DNA of 63,742 bases, filler included, from Octopus bimaculoides (lineage: Eukaryota), in NCBI RefSeq assembly GCF_001194135.2. It is 6 parts of 6 records of this genome, joined end to end, with 100 filler letters (N's around TTAATTAATTAA, not from the genome) between each part and the next. Parts side by side here need not be neighbours in the genome. Positions count along the whole stretch, not along the records: positions 39,011 to 59,332 come from NC_068997.1; 5 more parts are not named here. One strand, given 5' to 3'. Shown here one piece after another: positions 5,141-60,134 of the stretch (position 1 is the stretch's first letter; every line of letters begins with the position of its first letter). A model generated the notes under the pieces. The model saw only the letters and a program-made list of their open reading frames with translations. It was not told the DNA's origin and ran no database searches. A program made the position numbers and the translations under genes.

Positions 5141-5289
5141 GGGGGTGTTTGCTGTGTGTCTGAAAGTAGAGCTGACAGTAGAAAGGTGGTTTTATGTTTG
5201 GAATCGGTAGTATGAATATATCCAAGAATAAGTCGGACTTCCAAGACGACAGCCGTTTATTTTTGTGGATTTTTGTTTTATTGTTCTGT

Positions 5290-6150
5290 TATGATTGATA
5301 CTGATGACGCTTATGATGATGATGATGATGATGATGATGAGGATGATGATGATGATGATGATAGCAATGATGGTGTTGATGGTGGTGGGGGTGATGATGA
5401 TGATGACGATGATAATGATGACGATGACGATGATGATGATTGTGACGATAAGGAAGACGGTGGTGTTGGTAAATGTGGTGGAGAGTGGATGGGTGGCGGG
5501 CGGGAAGCTCTTGCTAAGTTTGCTGCTGCTGCCAGAGACGACAACGGAGTTGATGACAATGATGACGATGACAATGATGATGACGACGACGACGACGATG
5601 AGGAGGAGGAGGGGGAGGAGGAGGAGGAGAGGAAGAGGAGAGGAGGAGGAGGAGGAAAGCATTCTGATCTCCTTTCGCAGAAGAGCAAGTGAGAACATGT
5701 GCGATGATAGAGGCATGATGTGGGAGAATATAAAACACCGGGGTATTTGTGAGAGACAGAGAGAGATAGAGGGGGGAAAAAAGGAAAAGTGGGGAAGAAG
5801 TAGAGAGAGAGAGGGGGGGACGAGATGATGTGGAGAGCTGAGCAGATATCTGTTAATAATGGACCGAATTCTAAAGGGAGATGAGAATGAAGAGACAGGA
5901 AATATGATAGGTTCTGTGTGTGTGTGTGTGAGGAGAAGGAACTGAGAGACGGAGAGAGACAGACAGACAGAGAGAGACAGAGACAGAGATAAAAAGAGAG
6001 AGAGATAAGAAGAGATAGAGAGATAAAAAGAGAGAAAGAGCGAAGTGGGAGGAGAGAAATTAAAATAAAATTAGGAGACGTTGGAGAGTGAATGATTAAA
6101 ATATTTCGGATGCAATAAAGAAAATTAAGAAGGAAAGAGAGAGAGAAGGA

Positions 6151-6184
<34 letters not shown>

Positions 6185-6523
6185 GAGAGAGAGAGTGAGA
6201 GAGAGTGAGAGATAGAGAAAGTGAGAGAGAGAAAATGAGAGAAAATGAGAGAAAGTGATAGAGAGAGAGAGAGAAAATGAGAGAAAATGATTGAGAGAAA
6301 CAGAGATATGAGAGAAATGGAGAGAGCTGTGTGAGAAAGAAAGACTTGTGTAATTCTACGCATGTATGTATGCACTCAGATACATATATATATGTATATC
6401 TATATATATATGAGTGCGTTAGAGCCATACAACTTGAGTGTATGCATGAATGGGAATATACGAGGATAAATGTTAGTGTTTGCTCGTATGTGTGTGTGTG
6501 TGTGTGTGTGTTTAAAAGCAAGC

Positions 6524-6559
<36 letters not shown>

Positions 6560-6725
6560 ATGAAAGAAAGAAAGAAAGAATGAATGAAAGAATGAAAGAA
6601 AGAAAGAAAATGGCGAATAAGGGAAGAAACAAAAGGAGAGAAGTAGTAGAGAGAGAAGATAGAGCTAAGAGTGAGGAGCAAAAAGGAGAAAAATAATAAC
6701 TGTAAAGGTAGCACTTAAGGGAGCT

Positions 6726-9959: not shown

Positions 9960-10069
9960 AGACGGTCAGCTGGCAGAATCGTTAAGCACGCCGGGTAAAA
10001 TGATTAGCGGTGTTTCTCCCGTCATTACGTTCAGTGTTCAAATTCTGCCTTGGTCAAGTTTACCATCAT

Positions 10070-10400
10070 ACAATGCCAAATTATCCGTCAATCTCCCAGC
10101 CAAAACAGCACCAACTACCACATTCTATAAGCAACCAGCCTCGAATTGCCATCATGTAATGACACTATACGTCAATTTCCTAGCCAAAATGAATAGGAGA
10201 GTTTTCTGCGGTTGCTTGTGGAATAAGGTAAAAGTTTTGTTTGGCTGGGAAAATGACAGATGATGCGCTGTTGCATGAAGGGGGCTTTGTGTTGGTGTTG
10301 TTTATAGAATGAGTAATTCGCAGATGGATTCGCTTTGCATGACATGGGTACGAGTGATGATTTAGCTGGGAAAAATGACGGAATAGCGTACCATTGCATC
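10070..10400. repeat. Foldback-like element with direct and inverted subrepeats
   Basis: cgtcaat.tccyagccaaaa occurs at about 10088 and 10170; its reverse complement (ggctgggaaaatgac) occurs at about 10242 and 10362. Confidence 0.65.
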
Positions 10401-39010: not shown

Positions 39011-39593
39011 CGCAGAACAAACACAAGCACCCCAAGAAACTTGTTGTGTTCTGCGTCGTCTCCAGTGAAATAAACTTTGACCAAGAACAGAAGGTCAACA
39101 GAAGGAATAACAAGTATCCATGTGCAGCCTCTACAGACAAATCCATGGTGACGCACACCAAGTTCCCATCATCTCTCATGGTCTTGAGGATTGTGAACAA
39201 GAGCTATGTTATTCCACCTCGCTTCTTTTTGAAGGGACTCTCTGAGCCTATGTCACCATCCTCATCAAGCTGATGGACCCAGTGGTTAAGCCTTGAATGG
39301 GGTGGGTTGGCCAAGGGAAGACCGTGCATGTTTCTGCTACTTTCCACATGGCCTTCACAATACAAGAGTGGCTGGTTGATTTCCCCACAAAATGTGATAT
39401 CCAAGCTCCACTGATATGAACCTCCAACACTGCTACTACATCTGGGATGTCATCAAGAGGGAGACCAGCCAGCAGCTCCACAACATCAAGGACTCATTGA
39501 AGGCCACCATCGCCGATGTGACAGGCAGCATTAATGAGAACCACCTGATTCTGGCATCCAGTCGCTTCCATGGCCGCATTGAAACCGTCATTG
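39011..39593 (+). mobile_element. maT/DD37D-type Tc1-mariner transposase remnant
   Basis: SSEINFDQEQKVNRRNN...VTHTKFPSSLMVLRIVNK..VIPPRFF...DMNLQHCYYIWDVIKRET...DSLKATI...HLILASSRFHGRIETVI. Confidence 0.85.
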
Positions 39594-39789
39594 NNNNNNN
39601 NNNNNNNNNNNNNNNNNNNNNNNNNNNNNNNNNNNNNNNNNNNNNNNNNNNNNNNNNNNNNNNNNNNNNNNNNNNNNNNNNNNNNNNNNNNNNNNNNNNN
39701 NNNNNNNNNNNNNNNNNNNNNNNNNNNNNNNNNNNNNNNNNNNNNNNNNNNNNNNNNNTTTGTTACACAAGTGCATAAGCCACTGTCAG

Positions 39790-41627: not shown

Positions 41628-41661
41628 CTGTGGTATCCTTTAATGCATCATCAGATTGTTC
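41628..41661 (-). CDS. SAFB: SAFB-like exon 5 (EQSDDALKDTT)
   Basis: 34 nt; acceptor ttcttcactttccag|GAA, donor CAG|GTATGT; phase 0 to 1, in frame with exon 4. Confidence 0.7.
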
Positions 41662-42054
41662 CTGGAAAGTGAAGAAAAAAAATAACTGATATGACTAATA
41701 GCAACAAATGAAAGAAAACACATACAGTAGCAGTACATTTTTCATTTTTACTTTCATTCATATTATGTCAAATTGCTTATCTTTATATGTAATATAATTG
41801 TGAATCAAGATATGTGTATATGTGAATCAAGATGTTTTTATGTTTCAAGAATTTTAAGTGGAATTTATAATTGGTCAACTGTGATAGATATAGGAAACTG
41901 TTGAATTTCAAGTAAAATAATCTTCATATTAATGAAATCATACCATATCTAACACTAATTATCAATTATGAAATGAAAGTAATAACTTGCACTAAAACAA
42001 GTAGTGCAATATAGTTAGTAGAACAATGTAAAAGGTGTAGTAAATTTTAATTAC

Positions 42055-42294
42055 CTGTAGAACAGTTCCAGTGTCTTTGTCCGTATCTAAAGAGATAGGT
42101 AGTTCCTCTTTAAACTGGTCTTTATCTAAGGTGTTATCTGTCAACATATCTGATGGTTTGGTGTCACTCGAAAGCAGTCGATCCTCTGTAAGGTCTTCCA
42201 CAGAAGTTTTGTCAGAGAGCAAAGAGTAACCATTTGAATTGGAGGTGTTTAAGAAGACATCTGTTAATGCCACGTTAGACGTCTCCGATTCTTT
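42055..42294 (-). CDS. SAFB: SAFB-like exon 4, acidic linker (KESETSNV...DTGTVLQ)
   Basis: 240 nt open frame, D/E/S/T-rich; acceptor ttttaattttcag|AAA, donor CAG|GTAATT; phase 0-0. Confidence 0.8.
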
Positions 42295-45200
42295 CTGAAA
42301 ATTAAAACAAAACAAGTTTCCGTTACCCCTCAACATTGAACCATCCGATATTTATCCTTTGCTCACTGTAATATCCATTAGTATCTTATTCTTATTGAAT
42401 GCTTAAATTATTGCTGTATTCCATTTTTACAGAAGTAAAGAGACAGACAGTTATAGGACATGACACACACAAAAATTTATAAATGTAACACATGGGTAAT
42501 CACAAGCTTAAAATGGCGTATAGTAGACATGTATGTATATATTGAGTGTGTGTGTGTGTGTTGCTTTGCTATGGACAGCAGAAAAGCCACCTACCCCCTC
42601 TCTCCTTAAAGCTACGCATTCCTTACACCCACCTTTCTGTGTGTGTGTGTGTGTGTATGTTGTATCTATGTATTTACGAAAGTACATATGCAGTGTCGTG
42701 TGCATATGACAGCTTTATTAATGTTATCACCCTATTTCTACCTTCACTGATATAAGTCACCCTCTCGCTGTTACTACCTCAGACTTACACTTTTGCAACC
42801 TTCTCATATAATTTGGCCAACACCCCTGGTGGGCACATTATAGATTTTTATTGAAATCTAATTGGCCTATTATTGAACTGGATGTTAGTGTCACATGTAT
42901 GCAAAGTTTCATGAATATTGGTTTGGCGGTTTAGGCACTAAGTTGCTAACAGATAGACAGACAGAAATTGCCATATATATATATATATANNNNNNNNNNN
43001 NNNNNNNNNNNNNNNNNNNNNNNNNNNNNNNNNNNNNNNNNNNNNNNNNNNNNNNNNNNNNNNNNNNNNNNNNNNNNNNNNNNNNNNNNNNNNNNNNNNN
43101 NNNNNNNNNNNNNNNNNNNNNNNNNNNNNNNNNNNNNNNNNNNNNNNNNNNNNNNNNNNNNNNNNNNNNNNNNNNNNNNNNNNNNNNNNNNNNNNNNNNN
43201 NNNNNNNNCACACAAACAAACGTGTGTGAATACATTACTGTTACCATGCCTTCATATCACAAGATAATTGTAAACAATTATCGCAGACTACTATACTAAT
43301 CATAAAGTTGGAGACTAATGTATTACCAACAATAACATGACCACAGTGTCCAAGAAACAGTAGATTTCTATACTAAGACAGGGAAAATGAATGAGTATTT
43401 TAATCACAAATAATCAGCCATGGACTCCATCTCAAAACAAAAAGTGGCAAACACCACCAAAAAAATAGTATACTAAACAGTGACAATTGGAAAATATGTA
43501 GAAGAAAGAAATTATCTACAAAAATATGACAGAATTCACCAACCTCATCCATGTTGTCTGTAGTATGCTCATTTTCTAGAAATAAAAATAATTTAACATC
43601 AATTTAGTAATTTCAATATTATTTATCATTCAGTTACACACACACACACACACAAGCTTATGTTACACGCATCTGAACAGAGACACAAAAACAGTCACAC
43701 ACAGCTGTACACGGCATAACATTGAGTTAATCACACATTACATAATACTGTTACACACATCTAACCAGTTTAAAATTCGGTTTCACACACCTGAATATGA
43801 GAACTAGTTATATCAACTAGTTATAAGAACATGAAACAAGTTGCTGTTTTATATCCAATTATCACATTAACAATGGCAGAAAGGGTTTTAATGCACTTTT
43901 TGCTCATAAAATATATTACTGTCAAATGGGAATGGGACTTGTCAGCTCACTAGACAGAGACAACACAGTTTGCTAAGAACAACACATCTAATTTATTTAC
44001 AGTCTAAAATATAATTATCATGACTTATACATCTCCCAGTGTTAGCACCAACATTATTGCAAAAATCATCATTTAACATCCATCTTTGATGCTGGCATAG
44101 GTTGAACTGTTTGACAGGATCCAACAGAGCCAGAGAATTGTGTCAAGCTTCTATGTCAGCGCTGGCATGGTTTGGATGCCCTTCTAAATACCAACCACTG
44201 TACTCATTGTACTGGGTGCTTTTTCCATAAGACAAGCACTAGGGAGGTCACCAAGTAATTTGCAAAACAAAGGAAAAAAACCCAGCACTGAATGGGATTG
44301 TAGTAGAGTTGGAAGTTATGCCAGGTGTTCAGAGGCCAGAGTATGATAGAGAGACAGGCTCAGGTGTCTTCTTATAGAGAAAATAAATGGCTACACCGAC
44401 ATTATGTAAAGGTGGGTGGGAGTAAGTGGAAAGAAGACAGTGATGGTAGTGACAAAGAGTCAGAGAGTACTCTCAAGACAAAACAAGGTGAGTATAGGAG
44501 AGAATATGGACAGCAGGTGAGGACAGATGGGTGGGTATGTTAATCAGAATGAGAAATGAGAGTAATAACAGATGGTTAGAGAAGGGGGTAGAGATGGATG
44601 TAGTGAAGGAACAATGCTGGAGGTGTGGTTGATGGTCAATATGTGTATCAGAAGAAAAGGAATGGCTCAAGAAGGAAAAGGTGACAAGTGGCAGTGCAAG
44701 GAAGGGTGGAAAGCATAGTATAATAAACCTGTAGACAGATCAAAAAATAGGGAGATTATGAGAGACAGACATGGGAGAGAGAGAGAGAGAGATGTTCAGT
44801 AACAGATATTAATGTCAGAAGTACTAGGGATGGCTATAGAGAATGGGAGATAAAGGTGCAGGGAGACCATCAACAGCAGACACAAGATGGTATAAGAATG
44901 AGAGCAGATGCAAGAAGGTGTTAAAGACAAGTTATGGCAGTCTTAAGATGTGGTTCAGAGAAAGGGAAGAAAAGCAATAAGTAGAGGCACAAAGACAGGT
45001 GATTGGTCAACAATAAAATTCGAAACACAGATGACATAACTTAATATACATGCATACATTCTTAGCATACATATAAACACATATACAAAATCTATATCTC
45101 TATCGTTAATTATATAATTCTGATACTTACTAATATCTTCAGTAGATTGATTTTCTTCCAGATTTTTCTCTTCAGAGTGAGTCTAGAATTGTCAAAATAT

Positions 45201-45737
45201 CAAGTTAAGGCTGTTAAAAAGTCTAGTGAAAGTGACACATTTTATAAAAAATTTGTTATAGGTAATTACAATGAGATGTACATGTGTTTGTGTGCATGTG
45301 AGAGAGAGAGAGAGAGGGAGAGTAAGTTGAAGAAGCAAGAAATTGAAAGTATTGAGAAAAATGCTGACAGAAAACATGTGTGTGTGCAATCCTATTCAAA
45401 ATTGGATTAACACAATTGCCTTTTATCTTTTACTGGCTGCAGCCATTCAGCTGCAGCCATGCTGGGGTACCACTTTGAAGATCCTCATTGAACAAATCCT
45501 GTACCCCACCCCCTGTACTCATCCTTTTAAAACTGGTACAAATTCTCTCAGTATTTTGGCCAAGCTGCAAACAAACCAACACTGGCTATTAAGTGGTGTG
45601 GATTTGGAATGGGGCAAAATTCTTCAGTGGAATTTTATATAATTTAGTGGAATTCTTGAGCAAGATTAAGTTGAGATAATCACAAGAAAAGAGAAATTAT
45701 TAAAATTAAAAAAAAAAAAACAAAAAAAAAAACTCAC

Positions 45738-45763
45738 GTCAATTTTCACCAAGGCAGCTACAT
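45738..45763 (-). CDS. SAFB: SAFB-like micro-exon 3 (DVAALVKID)
   Basis: 26 nt; acceptor ttattgtttttcag|AT, donor GAC|GTGAGT. Phase 1 to 0 links exons 2 and 4 in frame. Confidence 0.7.
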
Positions 45764-45986
45764 CTGAAAAACAATAAGAACATTTAATTAAGAGGAATGA
45801 AAATGAACATCAAATTAGATTTCTAATTATGAATTAACCTATACATAATAGAATCATGTCATTTTCTTCAATAATTAAAGTTTAAGCAAATCCAGTGCTA
45901 GCATACATGCATGGAGAGATGGATAAACAAACAGACAGGTGGGTAGGTGGATGAGTGAGTGAATGGCTGGATGGATTGAGCTAAAT

Positions 45987-46018
<32 letters not shown>

Positions 46019-46533
46019 NNNNNNNNNNNNNNNNNNNNNNNNNNNNNNNNNNNNNNNNNNNNNNNNNNNNNNNNNNNNNNNNNNNNNNNNNNNNNNNNNN
46101 NNNNNNNNNNNNNNNNNNNNNNNNNNNNNNNNNNNNNNNNNNNNNNNNNNNNNNNNNNNNNNNNNNNNNNNNNNNNNNNNNNNNNNNNNNNNNNNNNNNN
46201 NNNNNNNNNNNNNNNNNNNNNNNNNNNNNNNNNNNNNNNNNNNNNNNNNNNNNNNNNNNNNNNNNNNNNNNNNNNNNNNNNNNNNNNNNNNNNNNNNNNN
46301 NNNNNNNNNNNNNNNNNNNNNNNNNNNNNNNNNNNNNNNNAAGAAACTTGCTTCTCAGCTACATGGTTTCGGGTTCAGTTCCACTGCGTGGCACCTTAGG
46401 CAAGTGTCTTCCGCTATAGCCCCAGGCCAACCGAAGCTTTGTGTTTGAATTTGGTAGGCGGAAGTTACTGACACGTATGTATATGTGTGTATAGGTGCTT
46501 GTGCCTCTCCGAGAGAGAAAGAGAGGGAGGGAT

Positions 46534-46584
<51 letters not shown>

Positions 46585-46796
46585 GATGGACTTCCACACA
46601 GTTTTTGTCAACCAAACTCATTGGACAGTCTGGGGTTCTAGTAGAGGACACTTGCCAAAGGTGAATCTGAAACCACATGGTTGCAAAGCAAGCTTCTTTA
46701 TCACACAACTATGCACACATACACACACACAAGTACTGATCTAAAACCAAAAGAAACAAAACACCCATAACTAAAATAAATGAGATAGAACTGCAC

Positions 46797-46854
46797 CTGA
46801 TTTCTCTTCACTTCCTTTGGTATTTTTACGACTTTCTTCTTCACATTTCAGAGC
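46797..46854 (-). CDS. SAFB: SAFB-like exon 2 (ALKCEEESRKNTKGSEEKS)
   Basis: Acceptor tctcttttccacag|GCT, donor CAG|GTGCAG; phase 0 to 1. Gives ERLEK|AL, as expected after the SAP helix. Confidence 0.8.
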
Positions 46855-48051
46855 CTGTGGAAAAGAGATAACAAAAGCACTGATGAGATCCTTGAATCTT
46901 CATTAGCACAACATCTATAACATTTGTTGGTACAGAAACCATTAGATATTTAAAGTAACACAGACATGCTATCAATCTATTACCATCTGGTTTGCAATGC
47001 TGGCACAAATTGTATTTGTTTGCTATATAACAAACCAACCATCTTAGTTTTATCAAACGGGAATTATAGCAATAATAAGTGTGTGATAGATTCTCTTTCA
47101 TAGGACTAATTTGAATAGTGGGAGCCATTTTCTTCCAATCCTAGTTCTACCTTTTACTTTAACCATATTTCTGTCAAAAGACATTGCTTTTGTTTCAATT
47201 TATTTTGAAAGCAGCAAAGAACTTAACCCTTTCATTACTGTATTCATTGAGATGCTCTGTGTTTCTTTCAATTAATTTTAAATAAAACAAGGAATTTAAT
47301 AAAATAACTTAATTATCATTAAGCTAGTGTTAGGAACATAAATTGAGACCATGGTTTGGTGGAAGATTTTAATTCAAAACTTATAATTTGGTCTAAAAAC
47401 TGATTAAAGTTTATTAGGGCCTCAAGGATTTAAATAAACATTTTTAAAAAAATAATGCTTTTAATTTACAACGAAGCTTGTAAAAAGTAATGGAAACTAC
47501 AAAAGTATCGGCACTGTCTTGGTATTAGCTGTCAGAAGTGAAAGTAGAACTGACAAGGAACGTTACTGCTGGTTTGAGTTGATTCTTTGGCTACTGACTA
47601 GCCGGAGCTATCTATCTGTCTGTCTGTCTATCTCACTATCTCTCTCTCTATATATATATATCTATCTACCTATCTATCTATCACTCGTTCACCTCTGTGT
47701 CCGTAGAATTTATCAAATTAGAAAACGCAAATTTAATATAAAAATATATTTTCTGAAATTGAAAATTATTTAAAATATAAAAATATAATTTTCAACAAAG
47801 AGAATTTATCAAAATAGAAAACAAATGAAGTTTGAAGTTTAAAAATAATAGGATCGACCACTCACGTCTAGCTAGCGCGGACTGCATCCTTTAGGCAACT
47901 TCCGTCAAAATACTTTATTAAATTAATTTACAAATTTTGTGACCTAGAAACTAAGTTGCCTCGTAAGTTCACAAGTGCACATCTAAATAAAGAAATGCAA
48001 TTTTTTTTTTATAATGCTAGAATTATATTTACAGATTAATAAATTCAAAAA

Positions 48052-48153
48052 TTGGGCGAAGGTAAAGAATACGTACACCTGGTGTCTAGGGTCAATTTAG
48101 GGTTAGGGTTGCTCCGAAAACGGGTGGTGTGCATATTCTTTACCTCCGCCCAA
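48052..48153. mobile_element. Palindromic MITE-like element with internal TTAGGG
   Basis: 28-bp inverted ends (3 mismatches) around tagggtcaatttagggttagggtt. Confidence 0.7.
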
Positions 48154-48356
48154 AAAATGATTAACAGTAAGTTTTTATATAAGTTAAGCTGGCTGAATCG
48201 TTAACACATCGGACAAAATACTTAGGAGCATTTCCGACGGCCCTTTACATTTTGAGTTCAAATGCCGCCGATAAAATAAAATATCTGTCATGTACTGAGA
48301 TCAAAATAATAGACTACACCCCAAATTTCAGGCCTCGTGTATATAGTAGAAATTAT

Positions 48357-48488
48357 GGTAAATTTTCAGATTAACACCCGCACGATTTTCACAAGGGTGT
48401 TAGGGTTAGGCTTTTAGGGTTAGCGACGGAATTCCTTAACCCTAACACCCCAGTGAAAATCGTGCGGGTGTTAATCTGAAAATTTACC
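48357..48488. mobile_element. Palindromic MITE-like element with a TTAGGG/CCCTAA core
   Basis: 36-bp perfect TIR ggtaaattttcagattaacacccgcacgattttcac. Confidence 0.85.
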
Positions 48489-48701
48489 GAAATGATTATT
48501 ATAATTAGGAATTTTGGTTTCGTAAATAAAAACAGGAAAGAAACAATTTTCAGACATTCGAGTCCGAAGTCGAAAGAAGTGTTTATATATATATATACAA
48601 GTATACAAATGTCATTAAGGAGACGAAATGACAATGTTTAAAACTGATATAGTATTGTTTTTCTCTTGCTTTAATTGGTATGTTGCATAGAGAGACGTTT
48701 T

Positions 48702-48896
48702 GGTAAGTTTTCAGATTAACACCCGCGAGATCTTCATTAGGGTGCTAGGGCTAGGGTTTTAGGGTTAAGGTTACGGTTAGGGACGGAATTCCCTAACCCA
48801 AACCATAACCCTAAAACCCTAACCGTAACGCTAAACCCTGACACTGACCCTAAAACCCTAGTGAAGATCGTGCGGGTGTTAATCTGAAAAATTACC
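48702..48896. mobile_element. Second copy of the same TIR family with a longer telomere-like core
   Basis: Same TIR (ggtaa.ttttcagattaacacccgc...); left half (TTAGGG)-like, right half (CCCTAA)-like. Confidence 0.85.
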
Positions 48897-49696
48897 GAAG
48901 TTTTTACTGTATGCCAAAAATATCAAAACCAAAATAAAATAAAAGCTAATAGCATGACAGTGCCAAAAATTATTTTAATCGACAAAAGTACGTTGATGGT
49001 AGAGAGCAAAAACTTTTGTTTGGTTTTAAATTGTGAATTCCAAATGTTTTAGAATATGGAATATATGAGGGGCAAAAAATTTTTTTCTTTTTTATCTATC
49101 CATGGTTGTGAAGACACGTGGGGGAAGTGGGGCAAGTNNNNNNNNNNNNNNNNNNNNNNNNNNNNNNNNNNNNNNNNNATTTTCTTTTTATAAAACGCTT
49201 CCCCCCCCCCATCATTTTGAAATGCGTGGAGTAAAAAAAAATCCGTAAATCCCGACCAAAACAGAGAAAATCAAACTCATGTGGGTGAGCTTGTTTCGAA
49301 ACTCCGCCATTACGAATCAGTCCTTCGCCTTCCGTTTACAACTGAGTCCCTGATACTATATTCCATTAGATTCCCGTAAACAGTGGAATAATGTTGGAGA
49401 CCAGGGGGTAGATATATAACGAAGGATTACTTAGTAACAAATAATTAATCATGCTTTTATAAAATATAAACAAAAGTCATTTATAAACCGTTTGGGTTTA
49501 AAATGGCTACAAATGACTTTCGCCACAATGAAACCTTAATTTTCTTTCAATATACGTATAATATTTTGATCTGTTAGGCGTTTTTGTACGAGTTTTGAAG
49601 GTTCAGGAAACCCCCAACATTGTTATAATTATAACACTATGTTATTATATATATATATTACATATAAACACCGTCGCTCATTAAGATTTCTCCTAC

Positions 49697-49831
49697 CTTT
49701 TCTAAACGTTCCAACAACACGGCCTTTACTCCAGTCTTGTCCAGACCTCGTTTCTCCAGTTCACTGCGAAGATCCACAACCCTGAGATCCGTTAGTTTGC
49801 CACTAGAGATCTCACCACTTGCACTCGCCAT
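49697..49831 (-). CDS. SAFB: SAFB/SLTM-like gene, first coding exon (SAP domain)
   Basis: Translates to [45 protein letters not shown] (45 codons), which matches the SAP motif of scaffold attachment factor B (L.DLRV.DLR.EL..R.....G.K..L.ERL.K). Ends at AAG|GTAGGA donor, phase 0. Too short for the ORF track. Confidence 0.93.
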
Positions 49832-49993
49832 GGTATGATGTATTATGGTGTGAGCAAATATCGAGAGTCGTTATCCACTGATTTCCCGTCGAAGCAAAAA
49901 CTTAAGGACGCAATTGAAGTTTTATTTATCTTTACAAGAGTTACCTCCCTTTTATGCGTGGTGACGTTAAAGCTGCTTCGTTTGTTGTTGTTG

Positions 49994-50007
49994 CCACCAG
50001 GTGGCAC
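49994..50007 (+). promoter_or_regulatory. CTCF-like core motif upstream of the SAFB ATG
   Basis: CCACCAGGTGGCAC fits the CCASYAGRKGGCRS consensus at every position; about 165 bp upstream of the ATG. Confidence 0.5.
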
Positions 50008-50027
50008 AAGTGTCAAGCTGAAAAAGC

Positions 50028-50041
50028 ATTGCTATGGCAAC
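50028..50041. promoter_or_regulatory. RFX X-box-like motif
   Basis: ATTGCTATGGCAAC versus the palindromic consensus GTTGCCATGGCAAC (2 differences), in the putative promoter. Confidence 0.4.
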
Positions 50042-51353
50042 GACCATCACATTCCTAACAGTCTTCTCTTCATTCCTACTTGTACTGCAGGCAATACCTA
50101 CCTTACGGAACACCGCGTTCCTGAAAATCTTGTCGTAAGGTGGGGTTTCGTAACAGGAAACTGGTTTCTATGCTTATAACTAAGACGGTGCACAAATTTA
50201 TTCTTTGAATTTTCTACCAAAAATATTTGCCAATGTGCATTTTCAATCTTGAATTTTTATTTGTACTTTGTTTTGTTGTGTTACGCTCTCTTTACTGATT
50301 CATATTATATGCCTTTTGTATGACTAAAATACTTACTCTATCAGGTCTAGTCAGAAAACTAGACCTGATAGAGAAAAACTGAAGTTATTTTTGAATTTAG
50401 CAGGTAAATTCACTTAAAAATTTGTTGAAATATTCCAGGCACTGGACAGTTTTTTTTTGTTTTGTTTATTTTTGCCCAGTGTAATGTGACATAGCCATTT
50501 ATCTCCTCAACAGCAAGACGCCTGTCCCTCTATCATACTTTAAGCCTTCAACATCTGGCATAAAGCCACCTCCCCTTCTCTCAAACACTCCTACTCAGTC
50601 GAGGGGGATTTTTCCTTTCTTTATTTCACTTTGCAAGTTGGTGACGTCTCTAGTGCCAGCGTCACAAGAAAAGCACCCAGGGCATTCTGACCCTTTCAAA
50701 CCGTCCAACCCATGCCAGTACTGAAAACAGACATTGAATGATAATAACAATGACAGTGTGAACTGACTTGTACCCTCTGGACTGGACTGCATCTGTTGAA
50801 TGATGGTAGCATTAATATCCTGCACGTGATTTTTGAGAGTTAGGATGGCACATTCAGAAAGCCACTGTAGGTGTTCTATTTGAGATGATTGTCAGAGTTT
50901 GTTTGAAATGACTACAGAACTTTACCTATGATGTGAGTGTTACCTCTGAGAGCTTCTGTATGATTGAAAGCTTCGAACGCAAGTCTGTGCGACATTATGC
51001 ACTCATACTTTCAGCTAGGCCTGCTTGTCCAAATCCTCTGCCAATATTGCATACAGGACTGTCAGTGTGTGCAGGGATGGGTGGCAGTTCATAGCTAAAA
51101 AAGATAGGTCTTGCAACCTGTGGGCAAAGATGTGGCAATTCTGCAGGAGGCCACCACAGGAGGAATCTGAGTGAATAAACTTTTTGTGAAAAGTTAAGTT
51201 GATAACAAAAACGAACATTTTGACTTCCACTAGAAGCTTCAAGGAAAACAAACAGTGACATGTTGAAATAGAGAAAGAGGAAAGATGAAAAAGATGATAG
51301 AGCAAAAGCAGAGGGGGTAAAGAAAAAATATAGAAAGAAATACAGACATGAAT

Positions 51354-51736
51354 GAGTTGTTGTTGGCACTCTGTCGCTTACGTCGAGGGTTCCAGTTGAT
51401 CCGATCAACGAACCAGCCTGCTCGTGAAATTAATGTGCAAATGGCTGAGCACTCCACAGACACGTGTACCCTTAATTCTCGAGGATATTCAGCGTGACAC
51501 AGAGTATGACAAGGCTGGCCCTTTGAAATACAGGCACAACAGAAACAAGAAGTAAGAGTGAGAGAAAGTTGTGGTGAAAGGGTACAGCAAGGTTCGCCAC
51601 CATCCCCTGCCGGAGCCTCGTGGAGCTTTAGGTGTTTTCGCTCAATAAACACTCACAACGCCCAGTCTGGGAATCGAAACCACGATCCTACGACCGCGAG
51701 TCCGCTGCCCTAACCACTGGGCCATTGCGCCTCCAC
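51354..51736 (-). mobile_element. Full-length SINE family 1 copy with a 10-bp TSD
   Basis: Highly similar to 4580-4970; TSD AGACATGAAT at 51344-51353 and 51739-51748. Confidence 0.93.
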
Positions 51737-51797
51737 AAAGACATGAATATATACAGAATAAATAGAATACTTTGCAATTGTTTTATAGTGAATAAAA

Positions 51798-51848
51798 TTT
51801 ATTTCTCCATATATTACATTCTATGTGGTCTCTTTTCACTTCTTTATT
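51798..51848 (-). terminator. Candidate polyadenylation signals of the C-terminal SAFB portion
   Basis: AATAAA on the minus strand at 51843-51848 and 51798-51803, about 430-470 nt past the stop, with U-rich sequence downstream. Confidence 0.35.
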
Positions 51849-52271
51849 ACATTCTGTGGTTGATCTTCTTCCCCTCTCCTCCACTTTCGTAAATACAATG
51901 TATCTGGGCTCCTACCCCTCCTCTTTCATTAATGTATAACAACTGTAGGAAATGTGTGTGTCAGGAATAACAGTATAAAATATAGCAACAAATATGAAGG
52001 AAATAAATATATTAAGACAGTAATGTAAGAAAGAGTAGAGTGGAGTTAGGGAGAAGGCAACGTGTGTGTGTGTGTGTGTGTGTTAAAATATGGAAGGACA
52101 AAAATATGATTGGATGTCCAAGAACCAAGCACTACGTGACAAATGGAATGCAGGATGTGGCTGATATATTGGCTGGAGGGCAGGGTTTTGTTATCTGTCT
52201 CAGAGACTTTCTGCACCTCCAAAATCAAACACCTCACCATGACTCTCACACTTCAGTCCTCAGTTTGGATT

Positions 52272-52618
52272 TCACATAGATCCCATAATACTGTAAGCAT
52301 CAAAACGAGGTTCTTGCATACGTCCACTCGTATTACTACCACTACCACCACCACCACGTGTAACCATCATGATCCCACTATGTGACTGAGAGTTGCCAAA
52401 CGTGTTACCAGGTCCCAAGTTCTGCCCCATCCCCCCACTGTTACCGGGTCTGTTATTGTCAACAAATGCCCCACTGGCATCACGCCCCGTTTTGTGCATG
52501 GGGTTACTAAGCCACGGTTCATTGGATTGGTCCATGTCTCCATGCATGTGGGACCAGTTGTCCACTTTCCTATCAACACTGCCAGAATCCCAAGGAGATC
52601 TCTGGTCAGGTCCACCAC
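52272..52618 (-). CDS. SAFB: SAFB-like terminal coding exon, Gly-rich, ending EPRFDAYSIMGSM*
   Basis: Acceptor tttcttctttccag|GT (phase 1); open to TGA at 52274-52272. G/S/N-rich tail with an RFDAY motif typical of invertebrate SAFB/SLTM C-termini (recalled, not searched). Confidence 0.85.
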
Positions 52619-53080
52619 CTGGAAAGAAGAAAACAGAAAATGTATTAATGAATACACGAATATGAAAAATAAAGCGTGAAAGGAATTGATGTCAAAATAA
52701 AATGAAGAGAATATTGATGAAAAGAAAAGACAAAAGAGATATGGAGAAGAACAGGGCTTAATCCTTTAGCATTCAGATTACTCTGTTGAAAGTAATGTTT
52801 TTTCATTCACATTGTTTTGAATTAGTCATGCATTATCTTGTAGCTTCAAGATTTTGATGAAGTGATTGTTTATTTTGAGAATGACACTGTAGGGGAGGTG
52901 TGAGAAGCCAGATCTAGTTGAACATAAAACAAGTAAAATATCTGGGCCCAACATCAGTGGTTTAAGTGCTACAGAGTTAAAAGAAAGAAATAGAGAAGGA
53001 TAGCTACAAAATGCTTTAAGAAGTGGGTGAAATTTTACTTGAGAGAGAGAAATGATTGAAAGAAGTGAGTGGAAGCTTAC

Positions 53081-53220
53081 CAACAGAATTTCTCACCCTG
53101 CCCAATCTATCGTGAGATGACATATTTCGTCGGTCATTATCACGTCCTCGATCAGAACCAACATATCTTTTATCAGGCTCTCCACTTGGTCCCATATCTC
53201 TTCTTAATTCAAAGGGCATC
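53081..53220 (-). CDS. SAFB: SAFB-like penultimate exon (MPFELRRDMGPSGEPDKRY...RVRNSV)
   Basis: Acceptor caacatacag|G (phase 2); donor TTG|GTAAGC (phase 1) fits the last exon. Confidence 0.8.
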
Positions 53221-53588
53221 CTGTATGTTGAGGTAAACCAGATACAAAATTAAACAAATTACTTTATAAATGTTTAGCAACATACTGTACAAAGGACAAT
53301 ATATACAACCTGAGCAACTGATCAACATTCACCTATATAGAACCTTGTTTACATCAACACTGACCCATATGGAGACTGGCATACATGCCAACATTAACCT
53401 CTAACAGAGATTGGTGTATACACCAAAACTAACCTGCATAGAGGCTAATGTGTGCATAAACTTTGACTGATTTGAAGGATAAGGTTTGTAACAAAAGCCA
53501 GATACCAGCTAGTGTGTAGAATAATAGTGACCAGTAGAAAGATACAAAATCAAAACAAAAAAGTCAGATTTAAAAAAACACAAATTAC

Positions 53589-53774
53589 CTGTTGAGTTTT
53601 TCATCTGTTCGAGAACGATCTTCAGCTCGTCTTTCATCTCTGACTCGAATATCTCGGAAAGGACCCATTTCCCTTCTCATCATTTCTCTTTCTTTACGTT
53701 CATCATAGCGACTTCCACCTTCGAAAGATCTACTGTCCCTTCTACCATAATCAGTATTCTCATATTCATTATAG
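53589..53774 (-). CDS. SAFB: SAFB-like R/D/E-rich exon (YNEYENTDYGRRDSRSFEGGSRYDER...DEKLNR)
   Basis: 186 nt, phase 2-2; acceptor ttttctctttcag|C, donor AG|GTAATT. Confidence 0.85.
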
Positions 53775-54649
53775 CTGAAAGAGAAAAAGGAAGATGAAAT
53801 TAGATAAGTATCCAATATACAATAAGATATGACAACTATTATGTTGATGCTTACTGAGGCAGAAACAAATATCTAAATCTGTCCTCTTGCTTGCAGAGAA
53901 AGCAGACTGCCTTTTCCTTAATCGTATAACAATTTCAGAGAACTCTTGGTTCTTTAGATTGTATCTCTTCCTCATTCAGAATCAGTAGCAATTACCAGCA
54001 GGTCTTTGTTTACCTTCTCTCAAAGCAACAACAATTTCTATAAATCAGAATTGATTTTGTATAGTATTTAGAATACCTTTGTTCACTTTGTTGTCAAAAT
54101 TGAAGCTATTGACCACCGAGTTTATACACACACCTCACATTTACAAACTGGATTATATACCTCGAATATAATTTAATCTCTCGTCACTTCGCATACAGTT
54201 GCCTCCTTCTTTACTGTGGTCCCGCTCAGTTGAATGAAAAAAAAAAAAGCACTTAGTTCAAAGAAACCATGCTAAAACAGATACTGGAGCATGATGCAGT
54301 CCTTCATTCGATTAGGTCCTGTCAAACCATCGGTGTCAGTGAGGAATACCAGAGCCAGGTTTCAGGGCTGTGGTGGAGGATGAGAGCAGCCACTCTAACT
54401 GAAGAGTTATCTTGCAGATATAATCTAGTTGGTATTTTTTGATTTTTAAAAAAATACATTTATTTTTCGATGGGACAGTGTTTCCTTTCCTTTTTGTACA
54501 AACTGTCAAATTTCGCCTCAACACTCTCTAAGCACACACATATAAAACAGGCCAAAGATTGAGAAACGCAAAAGAAACTTTAATTTAGAACACTAGCCAG
54601 GTAATAAGGATTCGATGACAACATATCATCTTCACCACTCACAACTTAC

Positions 54650-54793
54650 CGTGATTCATTCTGGAATGGAAGTTCAAATCTAGAGGGGTGGCCAGAACTG
54701 ATCATCCTGGATCGTTTAGGTTCATCCCAGAGTTCATCACGAAGACGGTTCCGATCATGAGGTTTTTTTGCAGGATGTCTCATTTCATTTAAC
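54650..54793 (-). CDS. SAFB: SAFB-like exon (LNEMRHPAKKPHDRNRLRDELWDEPKRSRM...QNESR)
   Basis: 144 nt, phase 2-2; acceptor gtttcatatcag|G, donor CG|GTAAGT. Resembles the SAFB RRP...D...W.E.KR motif after the coiled coil. Confidence 0.85.
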
Positions 54794-56346
54794 CTGATAT
54801 GAAACAAAAAAACAGCAAAATCAAGTAAAGAACAGCTGTATTGAATGACAAGCAGCTAAAGGATAAGATAACATAGTAAACAACATTAACTTTCAACAAT
54901 CAACCACCAGGACACCGGTTGCACTAACAATGTTGCCTCTGTGCAGTCCTCGAATGTACCAGAACCAGCATGCAAAATGTCCTCAAATTATCCCCCAACT
55001 GTCTTGAGAGAAAAACAAAATGTTGGATGCACTGGATAATGTAGTCCAACATTATGTCTGAGAGAAGAAAAACAAAAAACAAAGCTGGAACACCTTTAGG
55101 TCTGCTCCATCTGAGCTGACTTAGGTTTAAACAAACCCACCACCAATGAGCTGATATCCACATAACAAAAATATGGCAATAAAAAGCCCCCAAATCAAAA
55201 TTATGTAATGACATACCAAAACAGATAATGGACTTAATTTCTTGCTACTAATTAGCTAAAGATAATTTCATGTCAATATATAAAATTGCTTTGTAGACCT
55301 GCTGTTGTCATTCATTGTGTCAATACTGATCTACAACATAAAGTACTCGTTTCAGTCACGAGCAGTGGAATATAGAGATTTGGCTGCTATTGCTAGCAGA
55401 TCAAGCTGCTACATCACATACATGCTTCCACAAAGTGGTTTTGTTGCCATTTTTTTTTTTATTAACATGACTGCCACCTAAAAAGCACCTGTGCTAGAAC
55501 CACATGTGAAGCATCCACGTTGTTGCCCTGTAAAAAGCACCCAGTACATTCTGTAAAGTGGTTGCATTAGGAAAGGCATCCAGTCATAGATACTATGCCG
55601 AAACAGACAAATGGACACTGGTGCAGCTCTCTGATGGGCCAGTTCCTGTCAAACCGTCCAACCCATGCCAGAATGGAAAACGGACATTATGTGATGATGA
55701 TGATGATGAATGGTTGCGTTTAGGCTGTTGGATAAGTTAAGTCAGATGTGATGTGAACACCACTGGTTCATTGTCTTGCATCCTCTATCATGAGATCAAC
55801 AGATCAGTATTACAATATCTTTACATACACAAGAATCCCATTTGAAATTACTTTCCACAATTAGGAAAAGTCCTACATCCTAATCACCAATCCAACAAAC
55901 AAAACAAACATGAAATTATCCAAGGGGAATAAAATATAATTCAATCAAGTAAGTTGTATCAAAGACCTCCCATCCCAAAAAAAACCCAATAAGTTTGTCA
56001 TAAATATTTAGAAACTTTGAGAGAATGTGAAATAATTCATTCTCATCTGCAGAGCTCGAAGAAGATGAAGCTACAAATAATAACATGTACATATTGGCTT
56101 AATAATGTTTACATATAGAAAAAGTCAAAGGCTGCCTGTGGGACAATGGTAGAATGTCTGTCAAATTTACAGAAGATGTAGGTTCATGCTCAAGGGTAGC
56201 CTTTTGGCGTTTTCAGTCCAAAAGGGGTTCCTAGACCCAATATTTACATGATGTTATTTATGGTTTTATCTACTTTAAATTCTACAGATAAAAATTAATC
56301 ATTAAATTGACAGCATAAGAGTAACAACGCAACTTATCTCACTTAC

Positions 56347-56454
56347 CGCATCTCTACGTCACGCCTTTCCATTTCAAGAAGTTCTTTTTCCATCCTGTAT
56401 CTTAATAGTTTCTCTTTCTCCAGCTTCATTTTCTCCAGTTTCATTCTCTCCAAC
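56347..56454 (-). CDS. SAFB: SAFB-like exon B, copy 2 (LERMKLEKMKLEKEKLLRYRMEKELLEMERRDVEMR)
   Basis: 108 nt, phase 2-2; same acceptor context as copy 1, donor CG|GTAAGT. Confidence 0.82.
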
Positions 56455-57636
56455 CTGAAAAGTGTGAAAGAATATAAAGATAACATTAAGAATTTAAACA
56501 TCAAAATAAAAAAAAAAACTGACAATCCTTGCCTCACCAACTTGTATGTACCCTGACATGTTACTCTGCCAGAATATCCAAGAAACGTTCTTTTGAAACT
56601 AGAGGAAATTAAGTATTTGTCACCTTCAAAAACACATTTCACCCCTTGGAAAAGGGAAGTGAGTCAAGAAGATAAAATAACAGATAGAGTATCAGTCTGC
56701 TAAATCACAAATCATCATCACTGTGAGATGGACAAAGAGACTGGAGTCTTAAATAAACATTCACCCAACACTTAATGAGTACCATGTGGAGCTGTCATTT
56801 TCAAACACAAAATACATAAATAATATAGTACTACAGATACCCTCCCAACAAAAAAAAGGTGGGGAACAGTTAAAATTATAAGGTCTTTGATCATAGGCCT
56901 GAATGATAACTAAACAATACAAAGAAAACTTTACTACAAGAACAGAGAAACTGTCTAATAATCATCTCTTTAACTTTCTCTGTTCAATTCTTCCTTAGGT
57001 TTTGAACATGTATGCGTACAATGTATGTGAACATGTATGCAATAGGTGTACGTACATATGTTTTGTGTATGCATGCGTGTGTGTGTCACTGAAGCCAGTC
57101 ATAGATACATACACAACCTCTCTCTCTCTCACATATACACACACCAGCAACATTACTCTCTGTGTCTCTTCATACACACTAATGAAAGAACTTCACATAC
57201 ACACCACACTTTCTGTCTCTCACACCCCATCAAACACACACACATGGCACGCCAACTTCAAAAGAACTTCCCTGATCTAATCACACTGTCTCAGTCTCTT
57301 TCGCTTTCACGCCGACTTCAAAAGATCCCCTTTTCCCTCACCCCACATATATAAAAATTTTTAAAAATTTTTACAGAAAGCGATGATCTTCTTCAGAAAC
57401 ATAAACAAATACACATGCTTTAAGAAGCTATAAACACAGTTCTCATATCGAAAGATCGCCTAGTTTCCATTTATGAAAGCATTGGTCAACCCAAGACTAT
57501 GACAGAGACCACCCGTCCAAAATGATGCACAATGACACTGAATTTGATATTACGGAGGTGTGAAGTAAACTTGTTACCCGCCAAATCATGCAGTTCTGTC
57601 TTAAGCAGTTTAAACATGAATGCACTTTTAACAAAC

Positions 57637-57690
57637 CTTATCTTCTTTCTAACACTGTCCAATCTTATGGCCTCCTTCCTTCTTCAGTTT
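57637..57690 (-). pseudogene. Partial duplicate of the 3' end of exon A (EAIRLDSVRKKIR) with its donor
   Basis: Similar to 58358-58410 and followed by the same intron sequence (57470-57636 resembles 58188-58357). No own acceptor; starts about 35 nt after exon B copy 1. Confidence 0.6.
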
Positions 57691-57724
57691 CCATAACAGT
57701 AACAACATAATCTGTCTCACTCAC

Positions 57725-57850
57725 CGCAACATCTCAGCTGAATGCATCTCTACATCACACCGTTCTATTTCAAGAAGTTCTTTTTCCATTCTGTATCTTA
57801 ATAGTTTCTCTTTTTCCAGTTTCATTTTTTCCAATTTCATTTTCTCTAAC
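57725..57850 (-). CDS. SAFB: SAFB-like R/E/K coiled-coil exon B, copy 1 (LEKMKLEKMKLEKEKLLRYRMEKELLEIERCDVEMHSAEMLR)
   Basis: 126 nt, phase 2-2; acceptor ctttcacacttttcag|G, donor CG|GTGAGT. Confidence 0.72.
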
Positions 57851-58357
57851 CTGAAAAGTGTGAAAGAATATAAGGATAACATTAAGAATTTAAACGGATA
57901 ATTTAATGACTTTGCTCTCCTTTTGCTAAAATTTCCAAATTCCACCTAAGCTACAATTACTATGTAAAAAAACTATTCAAAACATAACAGTACTTAAGTT
58001 TTTAAGACATAGCAGTATTTAAAGTGCTTTCTCAGTGTCTCCAAGACAGAAGGGAAGAAGTTATCCTTAGATTAGAGACCAGGCCTAAAAGTTTGGAAAA
58101 GCGTGTACTCTGTTAAAGGCACCCAAGGATCAGATGTAGTTTTAAACAAGACAACAAAATAATTCTGCCTACAGACAGCTTTTAACATAGTTTCCATCTA
58201 TGAAAGCATTGGCCAACCTAAGATTATGATAGGAAATACCTGTCCAATATGATGCAGAATGACCCTGAATTTGGTATCATGGAGGTGTGAAGTAAACTTT
58301 TTTCTCACAAAATCATGCTGTTCTACCTTAAACAGTGTGAATGCACTTTTAACAAAC

Positions 58358-58535
58358 CTTATGTTCTCTCTAACTTTGCCCAATATTTTCGCCTCCTCCT
58401 TCTGTTTCCGTAAGACATCCTGCGGACACATATGATCTTTCAACCAACGCCTCTCCTGTACCCGACGATTTTTTTGTCTCTGACGTGAACGCTGTCTTTC
58501 TCTTTCCTTTGTCAAGAAATTTGGTGGGGTTTTGT
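58358..58535 (-). CDS. SAFB: SAFB-like R/E-rich exon A (KERERQRSRQRQKNRR...KVRENIR); 5' boundary uncertain
   Basis: Open frame resembling the ERERQRQRERE coiled-coil entry of SAFB. Donor AG|GTTTGT (phase 2) matches the next exon. No canonical AG acceptor follows the pyrimidine tract. Confidence 0.6.
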
Positions 58536-60134
58536 TTTTATTTTCAAGAATGGAATATGGAAAGAGAATAATTATTAAATAGCAAAGAATAAAATCAACA
58601 AAGAAAACATCTTAAAAGTAAATAACCATACAAAATAAGACTTGATATGATACAAAGAGCCAGTGACATAAAATATGGCAAATCTAAATACCACAATAAT
58701 TTAATACAAACATCTCAGATAGATTTTAGCAGTTCTGTATAGCACTAAAAGCTGCTACCCTGATATCGTAATACCCTTATATCCTGATACAAATAGGAAA
58801 ATCTCTTTGTTTTACATAATTTTTCCACACTAGACTAGGAGCTACATTTCCCTCTTCTAGCTAACTATTCAACCTTGAAGTAAATGTGGAATAAATTTTA
58901 TCAGTTGAGCAAACTTGAGTAAGTACAATTATATAATTTATTACAGGAAATAGGACACAATATTACAGATGTACAAAGATTTGAACTTCTACTCTTGTTG
59001 CCAATAGTCCAGTGTTTTACACCCACAGTCACAGTGCCTCTATTCAAATGAAATAGTTGACCTACTTCCACCTAATCTGGTTTGAAACTTCATTACATGT
59101 TCTATACTGCAACAGCCACAACAGTTACTACCACAACTATTGTGACTATTGCAGAGTCACATCTGAATCAATCAGCCTAATTTAAACAATTTCTTTAGGT
59201 TACATCTCAGCCATGCTAAACACTAAGACCTTCATTGGACCAACAATGCACTTCAAATTTAACATCCCAGTTATGATCAGTTTTAAGGCAGAGGAGCTGT
59301 ATCTCATGATTTCAAGAAGACATCAGGGATGANNNNNNNNNNNNNNNNNNNNNNNNNNNNNNNNNNNNNNNNNNNNTTAATTAATTAANNNNNNNNNNNN
59401 NNNNNNNNNNNNNNNNNNNNNNNNNNNNNNNNTATATATATATTGGAGAATGATGAAAATCGTCCCAGCCGCGGCTAGCAAGAACACCAGATGCTTTTCA
59501 GCCTCGTTAAGCCTTGTCATTAGCACATACTCACACTCACCCAAATGTTTAGATAAAATTTGTCACTTACAGTATGTAGGATGACAGTAAAATTCATTGC
59601 CTTATCCTTAGGTGATGATATGTAAGGTGGCCATCACTAAAACCTGGCCGCATAAACCAGCGGATGCAAAGATAGAAATAAACAAACTCTAACTTCCCGT
59701 ATCGCCATACAAGGAAGATTCATGAAAGTTACTGTAATTCATACACAACATTTAATGTCAATTCATTAACCCTTCAAATCTTCCTTGCTCTAATCAATAC
59801 ACGCAGAATATAATTATAGAAAGTCATTCAACGAATACAATGTTTGAATTAAATAACACTTTCATCAACAAGATGGAGAATACTTTACCCCATACACCCA
59901 ATACACCCACTGAGAAAAATTAGGACATCGCCTTACGTACAAAACCCTCACTGAGAGATAACTCAATAGCGCGTTCTTTTTTAGATACACCGGAAAGGAA
60001 AACGAGCTCATATTAGCTAAATACAAACATTTCCAACTAAAACATGAAATGAAAATTATTGTACGATCAAGATCTCAAAAGAATGGAAAGTAAAAAAGAG
60101 AAAAATTATATATTTGTGTCTGCGTGCGTGCATG

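Follow-up and report, generated by a model that had tools for sequence, protein, structure and literature searches.

Introduction

Mammals possess three genes of the SAFB family, SAFB1, SAFB2 and SLTM, of which SAFB1 and SAFB2 are arranged head-to-head. Here we analyse a window of Octopus bimaculoides DNA (63,742 nucleotides of assembly GCF_001194135.2 in six joined parts; "the window" is this whole stretch), one part of which, positions 39011-59332 (hereafter the piece), carries exons of SAFB-like genes on its minus strand. The octopus genes and mammalian SAFB1, SAFB2 and SLTM have in common the family, the domain order and an origin by local duplication. Unlike the mammalian head-to-head pair, however, the junction in the window is head-to-tail, and Octopus has about seven such genes against three in mammals. 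Since the octopus paralogs group within cephalopods in our tree, the sequence comparison indicates that their expansion is independent of the mammalian one.

SAFB proteins, which bind purine-rich RNA, act in human, mouse and fly as suppressors of transposon expression and exonization and of L1 retrotransposition; invertebrates are stated to have one SAFB gene (Ilik et al. 2024, PMC10901741). Drosophila Saf-B and Caenorhabditis elegans PHM-2 are homologous SAP- and RRM-containing proteins encoded by single-copy genes, as compared with about seven in Octopus; cuttlefish and Argonauta have at least two SAFB genes each. The genes of the octopus array are already present in RefSeq, named SAFB1-, SAFB2- or SLTM-like, and a literature search on SAFB in octopus and other cephalopods found no paper describing an SAFB expansion. 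Tandem expansions of protocadherins and C2H2 zinc fingers were reportedly described in the 2015 O. bimaculoides genome paper. Those arrays are likewise lineage-specific, tandem and same-strand in a repeat-rich genome, but the SAFB array is much smaller and belongs to another family.

The m3-m4 junction

We are confident that the piece covers the boundary between two neighbouring paralogs on one strand of a tandem SAFB-like array, namely the end of a gene that we call m3 and the start of the next one, m4. The piece corresponds to about 46.042-46.062 Mb of CM046617.1 (GCA_001194135.2), where chromosome position equals 46,042,704 + (window position - 39865) and both genes lie on the minus strand; the low-coordinate end of the piece matches the first part of locus L003, on the same chromosome, with 100% identity, the 165-N gap included. 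Threading a RefSeq-type protein through the minus-strand DNA placed seven C-terminal exons of m3 (58506-52272), with AG/GT boundaries, chained phases and a stop at the end, all of them 100% identical to RefSeq XP_052829886.1 (P0001, 304 amino acids, aa). After a spacer of 2.4 kb, seven exons of m4 follow (49831-41628, all AG/GT). The stop-to-stop frames of this strand show peptides rich in arginine and glutamate (R/E) and in glycine between 58.5 and 52.3 kb, and the SAP peptide at 49831. The features, in the direction of transcription, are as follows.

58358-58506, minus strand: m3 R/E exon RE1 (ERERQRSRQ...VRENIR), placed by threading, AG/GT sites and alignment to O. sinensis locus L006
57725-57850, minus strand: m3 exon RE2a (LEKMKLEKMKLEKEKLLRYRMEKELLEIERCDVEMHSAEMLR), first of two tandem copies, placed by threading, a match to P0001 and direct repeat D1
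57450-57690, minus strand: relic, a vestigial copy of the RE1 3' end with GT donor and intron start (repeat D2), absent from messenger RNA models
56347-56454, minus strand: m3 exon RE2b, second copy, placed by threading; RefSeq isoform X2 (P0001) begins at a Met inside it
54650-54793, minus strand: m3 C-terminal exon C1 (LNEMRHPAKKPHDR...FQNESR), threading and P0001 match
53589-53774, minus strand: m3 C-terminal exon C2 (YNEYENTDYGRR...DEKLNR), threading and P0001 match
53081-53220, minus strand: m3 C-terminal exon C3 (MPFELRRDMGPSG...RVRNSV), threading and P0001 match
52272-52618, minus strand: m3 last coding exon, Gly-rich tail ...RFDAYSIMGSM and stop (52274-52272), 100% identical to P0001
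49832-52271, minus strand: m3-m4 spacer (m3 3' untranslated region, a repeat, and sequence upstream of the m4 ATG), collinear with L001 5155-10000 and L006 44462-48770
49697-49831, minus strand: m4 first coding exon, ATG and SAP domain (Pfam PF02037, E=4.2e-11, 42.6 bits against a cut-off of 23.9)
46797-46854, minus strand: m4 exon 2 (ALKCEEESRKNTKGSEEKS), AG/GT
45738-45763, minus strand: m4 exon 3 (DVAALVKID), AG/GT
45131-45182, minus strand: m4 exon 4 (THSEEKNLEENQSTEDI), AG/GT
43544-43575, minus strand: m4 exon 5 (KNEHTTDNMDE), AG/GT
42055-42294, minus strand: m4 exon 6 (KESETSNVALTD...TGTVLQ), AG/GT
41628-41661, minus strand: m4 exon 7 (EQSDDALKDTT), the last inside the piece, AG/GT

The two sets of exons do not overlap and jointly lack residues ~194-621 of P0031, the O. 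sinensis ortholog of m3, that is, the large central exon, the RRM and a lysine/serine-rich linker. Because both genes have their central exons just beyond the edges of the piece, it gives the appearance of one rotated gene. The title of a first-pass annotation made from the sequence alone named a single SAFB/SLTM-family gene in circularly permuted order; we find two genes instead. Its observations of the DNA were largely sound, including in-frame splice phases within both halves, the lack of overlap and the missing RRM region. The C-terminal exons and their stop also hold, but begin at the acceptor at 58506, about 30 nt further downstream than the 58535 first given. Likewise, the ATG and SAP exon at 49831 was correctly placed 2.4 kb beyond the stop, but six further N-terminal exons follow it (seven in total) and not four.

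The same stop-to-ATG junction is present in three independent assemblies, those of O. bimaculoides, O. vulgaris and O. sinensis, and this bears out the head-to-tail tandem duplication that the first-pass annotation had favoured. In O. vulgaris (L001, OX597830.1) three genes follow one another on the same strand: a 1027-aa gene with SAP and RRM ending at 5154, an 825-aa gene with SAP and RRM (P0002) from 10001, and a 915-aa RRM gene. Window positions 56973 to 39011 are collinear with L001 271 to 24633 at 84-95% identity over long blocks, non-coding sequence included. In O. sinensis (L006, CM016875.1, free of N), P0028 (1020 aa) is followed by P0031 (1026 aa, from its SAP exon at 10001 to the stop at 44461) and then by P0023 (825 aa, from 48771), and the window from 59332 to 45651 is collinear with this gapless sequence. 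Gene order, orientation and exon structure in these arrays (O. vulgaris, OX597830.1, ~22.06-22.12 Mb; O. sinensis, CM016875.1, ~42.85-43.06 Mb) are thus as at the O. bimaculoides junction, and all three octopuses have in common the order 1026/1027-aa gene, 825-aa gene, SAP-less RRM gene. The spacer measures 4.3-4.8 kb in the other two species against 2.4 kb here, owing to 2.7 kb of extra sequence in O. vulgaris.

The halves also group with different orthologs, P0031 for m3 and P0002 (O. vulgaris) or P0023 (O. sinensis) for m4. The C-terminal exons in the window are 91-97% identical in nucleotides to their own orthologs, with a synonymous divergence (dS) of 0.13-0.15, and only 60-84% identical in nucleotides and 31-82% in amino acids, with a dS of about 0.67, to the C-terminal exons of the m4 ortholog.

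Each gene is completed by flanking DNA. The SAP exon of m3 lies upstream, outside the piece, at O. bimaculoides L002 16824, and together with the other N-terminal exons it occupies L002 16824-23436, with P0031 as the best match. Upstream of the piece, the old RefSeq model P0012 starts partway through an RRM, within its second half; P0031 has an RRM_1 match (E=5.6e-12). The next exon of m4, the large central one, falls in a 4.2-kb N gap of the chromosome record just past window position 39011 (L003 856-5058), and it is because this gap begins there that the piece stops at 39011. The rest of m4 lies 5-15 kb below the piece at L003 5285-14239 and comprises RRM exons at 5285-5383 and 6426-6575, 91-94% identical to P0002 (itself with RRM_1 at E=2.5e-9), then an R/E exon, another three exons of the C-terminal part and the last exon, whose product ends in ...NMMGSM (to L003 14239); these exons are 84-96% identical to P0002. 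We therefore have same-strand adjacent paralogs, each completed in flanking loci, with orthologs that are complete in two species. Within this stretch, L003 8210-8293 and 8517-8726 resemble an artefactual duplicate around small gaps.

The frame of m3 closes in its stop, and AATAAA signals occur at 51848 and 51803, about 420-470 nt past it. At the other end of the spacer, ~240 bp upstream of the m4 ATG are conserved among paralogs at roughly 80% and constitute a putative promoter/5' untranslated region of m4. Since this segment is conserved among paralogs, it suggests that each duplicated unit may have carried its own promoter-proximal sequence. All 14 exons in the window have an open frame and canonical AG/GT sites. 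Given the stop, the AATAAA signals, the conserved segment before the ATG, the intact splice sites and a ratio of nonsynonymous to synonymous divergence (dN/dS) of 0.2-0.3, m3 and m4 both appear to be functional genes, separately terminated and initiated.

Several points weigh against this reading. The dN/dS values obtained with the O. sinensis and O. vulgaris orthologs (C-terminal half, 0.29 and 0.20; N-terminal half, 0.22) are based on just 24-36 nonsynonymous and 20-29 synonymous differences per comparison. The case for separate transcription of m3 and m4 is built on the stop, the poly(A) signals and the gene models. The O. bimaculoides assembly is gap-ridden on both sides of the piece, and the large central and RE2 exons of m4, as well as 8 kb between L002 and the piece, are outside the sequence seen. 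Finally, O. sinensis gene-model isoforms cross between neighbouring paralogs, so that the units may not be fully independent.

Alternative explanations

This last point is the basis of the alternative that survives best, in which transcripts of the upstream paralog would cross the 2.4-kb spacer and splice into the downstream paralog, giving mixed isoforms. In O. sinensis, the RefSeq proteins P0029 (m1 body; SAFB1 isoform X3) and P0036 (m2 body; SLTM isoform X6) share terminal exons at L007 579-1923, while P0029 and P0030 have the N-terminus and centre in common and differ in their sets of C-terminal exons; the spacers of the array are also short (1.2-4.8 kb). These proteins, which hint at read-through for a junction other than ours, are either read-through or chimeric isoforms of neighbouring paralogs or artefacts of gene modelling; multi-mapping reads readily produce chimeras when models are computed for arrays of similar paralogs. 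At our junction, however, the m3 frame ends in a stop followed by the two AATAAA signals, and no joined m3-m4 model was present among the proteins retrieved. We therefore consider read-through across this spacer rather unlikely. We hold the same doubts about the broader idea that the array may be partly combinatorial, with transcripts running between paralogs and joining N-terminal/RRM modules to alternative R/E and Gly-rich tail cassettes. If this were true, a seven-fold expansion, unique among the invertebrates examined so far, would diversify an RNA-binding scaffold that suppresses transposons, in a genome with introns full of retroelements.

One might also ask whether the C-terminal block, the SAP block or both are fragments or pseudogenes left by partial duplication. 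RefSeq indeed annotates only fragments of 304, 226 and 186 aa for m3 and m4, and RE1 carries a 12-bp deletion relative to O. sinensis (window 58420-58400), with an unusually high divergence for the protein (74% identity in amino acids at 91% in nucleotides). The deletion keeps the frame, though, all 14 exons are open with AG/GT sites, dN/dS is 0.2-0.3, the orthologs are complete, and the missing exons either turn up in neighbouring DNA or coincide with N gaps. The RefSeq fragments arise because exons fall into assembly gaps. In particular, RefSeq evidently presents m4 as two models, one of 226 aa with the SAP domain and the "uncharacterized" LOC128249682 (186 aa), because its large central exon and RE2 exon would lie in N gaps (L003 856-5058 and 8882-9224). 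Two non-functional duplicates are thus improbable.

An assembly artefact, whether a collapsed near-identical array or a chimeric contig joining the 3' end of one SAFB gene to the 5' end of another, is less probable still. The O. bimaculoides assembly is short-read-based and gap-rich, and parts of m4 introns are 95-97% identical to m2. Nevertheless, the C-terminal exons of the neighbours are too diverged for a collapse, and this part of the first-pass annotation has to be abandoned. A chimeric contig, which that annotation had named as the outcome that would overturn its view, is contradicted by the presence of the junction and its flanking non-coding sequence in gapless O. vulgaris and O. sinensis DNA. 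In O. bimaculoides itself, the junction sits within a gapless 10-kb contig (49179-59332), as first described and as the positions of the N runs confirm.

A single gene on circular DNA, or a truly permuted gene with trans- or back-splicing, has only the appearance of the window in its favour (C-terminal then N-terminal exons, non-overlapping, on one strand), and we regard its probability as negligible, since the locus is part of a chromosome-scale array, is flanked by a different paralog on either side, and has two halves that group with different orthologs.

With m3 and m4 taken as neighbouring paralogs, the apparent anomaly disappears: nothing in the piece is permuted, circular or misassembled, and the junction is an ordinary boundary between tandem genes.

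Membership of the SAFB family

When a rough concatenation of the window exons was used for a protein search, the matches, from O. bimaculoides, O. vulgaris and Argonauta, carried the names SAFB1, SAFB2 or SLTM. Full-length octopus paralogs match vertebrate SAFB1, SAFB2 and SLTM with E values of about 1e-45 to 1e-49 and contain SAP and RRM domains; because of these matches and domains, assignment to the SAFB/SLTM family can be considered secure at the level of sequence. Members of the array have the order SAP, RRM, R/E region, Gly-rich tail. The SAP domain is encoded by the first exon of m4 in the window and by the m3 exon at L002 16824, and RRMs are found outside the window only, with none inside the piece. 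The R/E exons (58506-56347) encode ERERQRSRQRQK... and two LEKMKLEKMKLEKEKLLRYRMEKELLE units, which line up with the R/E region in full-length SAFB paralogs of octopus; for this region of m3, the label "coiled coil" is a prediction. The Gly-rich tail (52618-52272) encodes ...GNSGGMGQNLGPGN...TRGGGGSGSNTSGRMQEPRFDAYSIMGSM and is 90.5% identical to the tail of P0031, in a region for which Pfam has no model. By homology only, the octopus proteins may act as nuclear DNA/RNA-binding scaffolds, recognizing scaffold/matrix attachment region (S/MAR) DNA and purine-rich RNA, like the SAFB proteins of mammals and flies, which suppress the processing of RNA derived from transposons.

Layout and evolution of the array

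We mapped exon classes over the fetched loci and combined them with chromosome coordinates; these loci do not extend over the 8 kb that separate L002 from the piece, the 22.7 kb from L005 to L002, or the remainder of the O. vulgaris array. The O. bimaculoides array consists of about seven SAFB-like genes in two divergent arms (CM046617.1, 46.02-46.20 Mb). The minus arm contains, in order, m1, m2 (its C-terminus being P0004), m3 (C-terminus in the window), m4 (N-terminus in the window) and m5; the plus arm contains p1 (P0021) and p2 (P0015), followed by a gene that shows no SAFB-like exons over the part seen. The gene after m4, m5, encodes 915 aa in O. vulgaris (L001 53312-63225) and 834 aa in O. 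bimaculoides (L003 22250 onward); it carries an RRM and a central exon like those of SAFB genes, without a detected SAP exon in L001 or L003, and in O. vulgaris it starts only ~170 bp downstream of where the preceding gene model ends. At the centre of the array, the SAP first exons of m1 and p1 face each other head-to-head, 1.3 kb apart, in gapless sequence (L005 8586-8720, minus strand, and 10001-10135, plus strand). This arrangement resembles the mammalian SAFB1/SAFB2 layout and is probably of independent origin. Every internal junction of the array has the same structure, with the last exon and its stop, a spacer of 1.2-4.8 kb and then a SAP exon.

The same seven types are present in O. sinensis, where the central block (p1, m1, m2) has the opposite orientation, so that p1 adjoins m3 and m2 adjoins p2 (CM016875.1, 42.85-43.06 Mb), whereas in O. 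bimaculoides p1 adjoins p2 and m2 adjoins m3 (CM046617.1, 46.02-46.20 Mb; L002-L007). This difference reflects either an inversion by recombination between inverted paralogs or a (Hi-C) scaffolding error.

In a rough neighbour-joining tree of the C-terminal regions, built from identity distances and without support values, the C-terminus in the window groups with P0031, the m4 type with Argonauta P0005, and p1 with Argonauta P0035. As m4 and p1 each group with an Argonauta protein, this unsupported tree would place at least two SAFB lineages before the split between Octopus and Argonauta, the others having expanded later. Repeated unequal crossing-over of entire gene units, each with its promoter-proximal sequence, is the most likely origin of the array, and the duplicated units would then have diverged with some exchange between paralogs.

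Traces of such exchange may be visible within m3. The RE2 copies (57850-57725 and 56454-56347) are 1396 nt apart and 92% identical; this two-copy state is common to m3 and P0031, and other paralogs have one to three copies. The relic at 57690-57450 is a remnant of an internal m3 duplication, and its peptide (RRKEAIRLDSVRKKIR) is closer to the RE1 end of m2/m4-type paralogs than to that of m3 itself. This likeness suggests that the internal RE2 duplication may have come from unequal exchange between paralogs.

Two observations concern the N-terminal part of m4. Window positions 42428-41449 and 39593-39127 are 95-97% identical, over introns and exon 6, to L002 2542-3509 and 5073-5538 in m2, and m4 is far closer to m2 in these stretches than elsewhere in both genes. 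In addition, the m4 SAP exon has 95.6% amino-acid identity to that of the m3 ortholog, against 91% to that of its own ortholog. Taken together, they suggest that gene conversion may have acted among the array's N-terminal regions. The similarity between paralogs is mosaic in general, being higher in N-terminal than in C-terminal exons.

About seven SAFB-like genes in one array is a large number for a family stated to be single-copy in invertebrates (PMC10901741), and the main interest of the locus lies in the size of this expansion. Octopus thereby offers a natural system for asking whether the copy number or diversification of SAFB tracks the load of intronic transposons or neural complexity.

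Assembly gaps and other features of the piece

The G+C content of the piece is 36%. It contains four runs of N, at 39594-39758, 42990-43208, 46019-46340 and 49138-49178, and 49179-59332 is free of them. The last three interrupt m4, as listed here without strand.

49138-49178: assembly gap in m4 intron 1, flanks collinear with L001 10657/11520, 0 ortholog exons between
46019-46340: assembly gap in m4 intron 2, flanks collinear with L001 14507/15471, 0 ortholog exons between
42990-43208: assembly gap in m4 intron 5, flanks collinear with L001 19294/20558, 0 ortholog exons between

Both flanks of each gap have the same order and strand as in gapless O. vulgaris DNA, and no exon of P0002 was found in the intervals that match the three gaps. 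We therefore conclude that they are intronic. The coding frame across them chains as in P0002, and their stated lengths are too short by roughly 60-720 bp when compared with O. vulgaris.

An Rfam scan of the piece gave no match, and two intronic open reading frames near 39.4-40.1 kb, transposase-like by eye, had no significant match in a Pfam scan. Interspersed repeats are found at 51749-51367, in the m3-m4 spacer, and at 55709-55533; in the fetched octopus loci they occur in many copies, in both orientations, at 75-91% identity.

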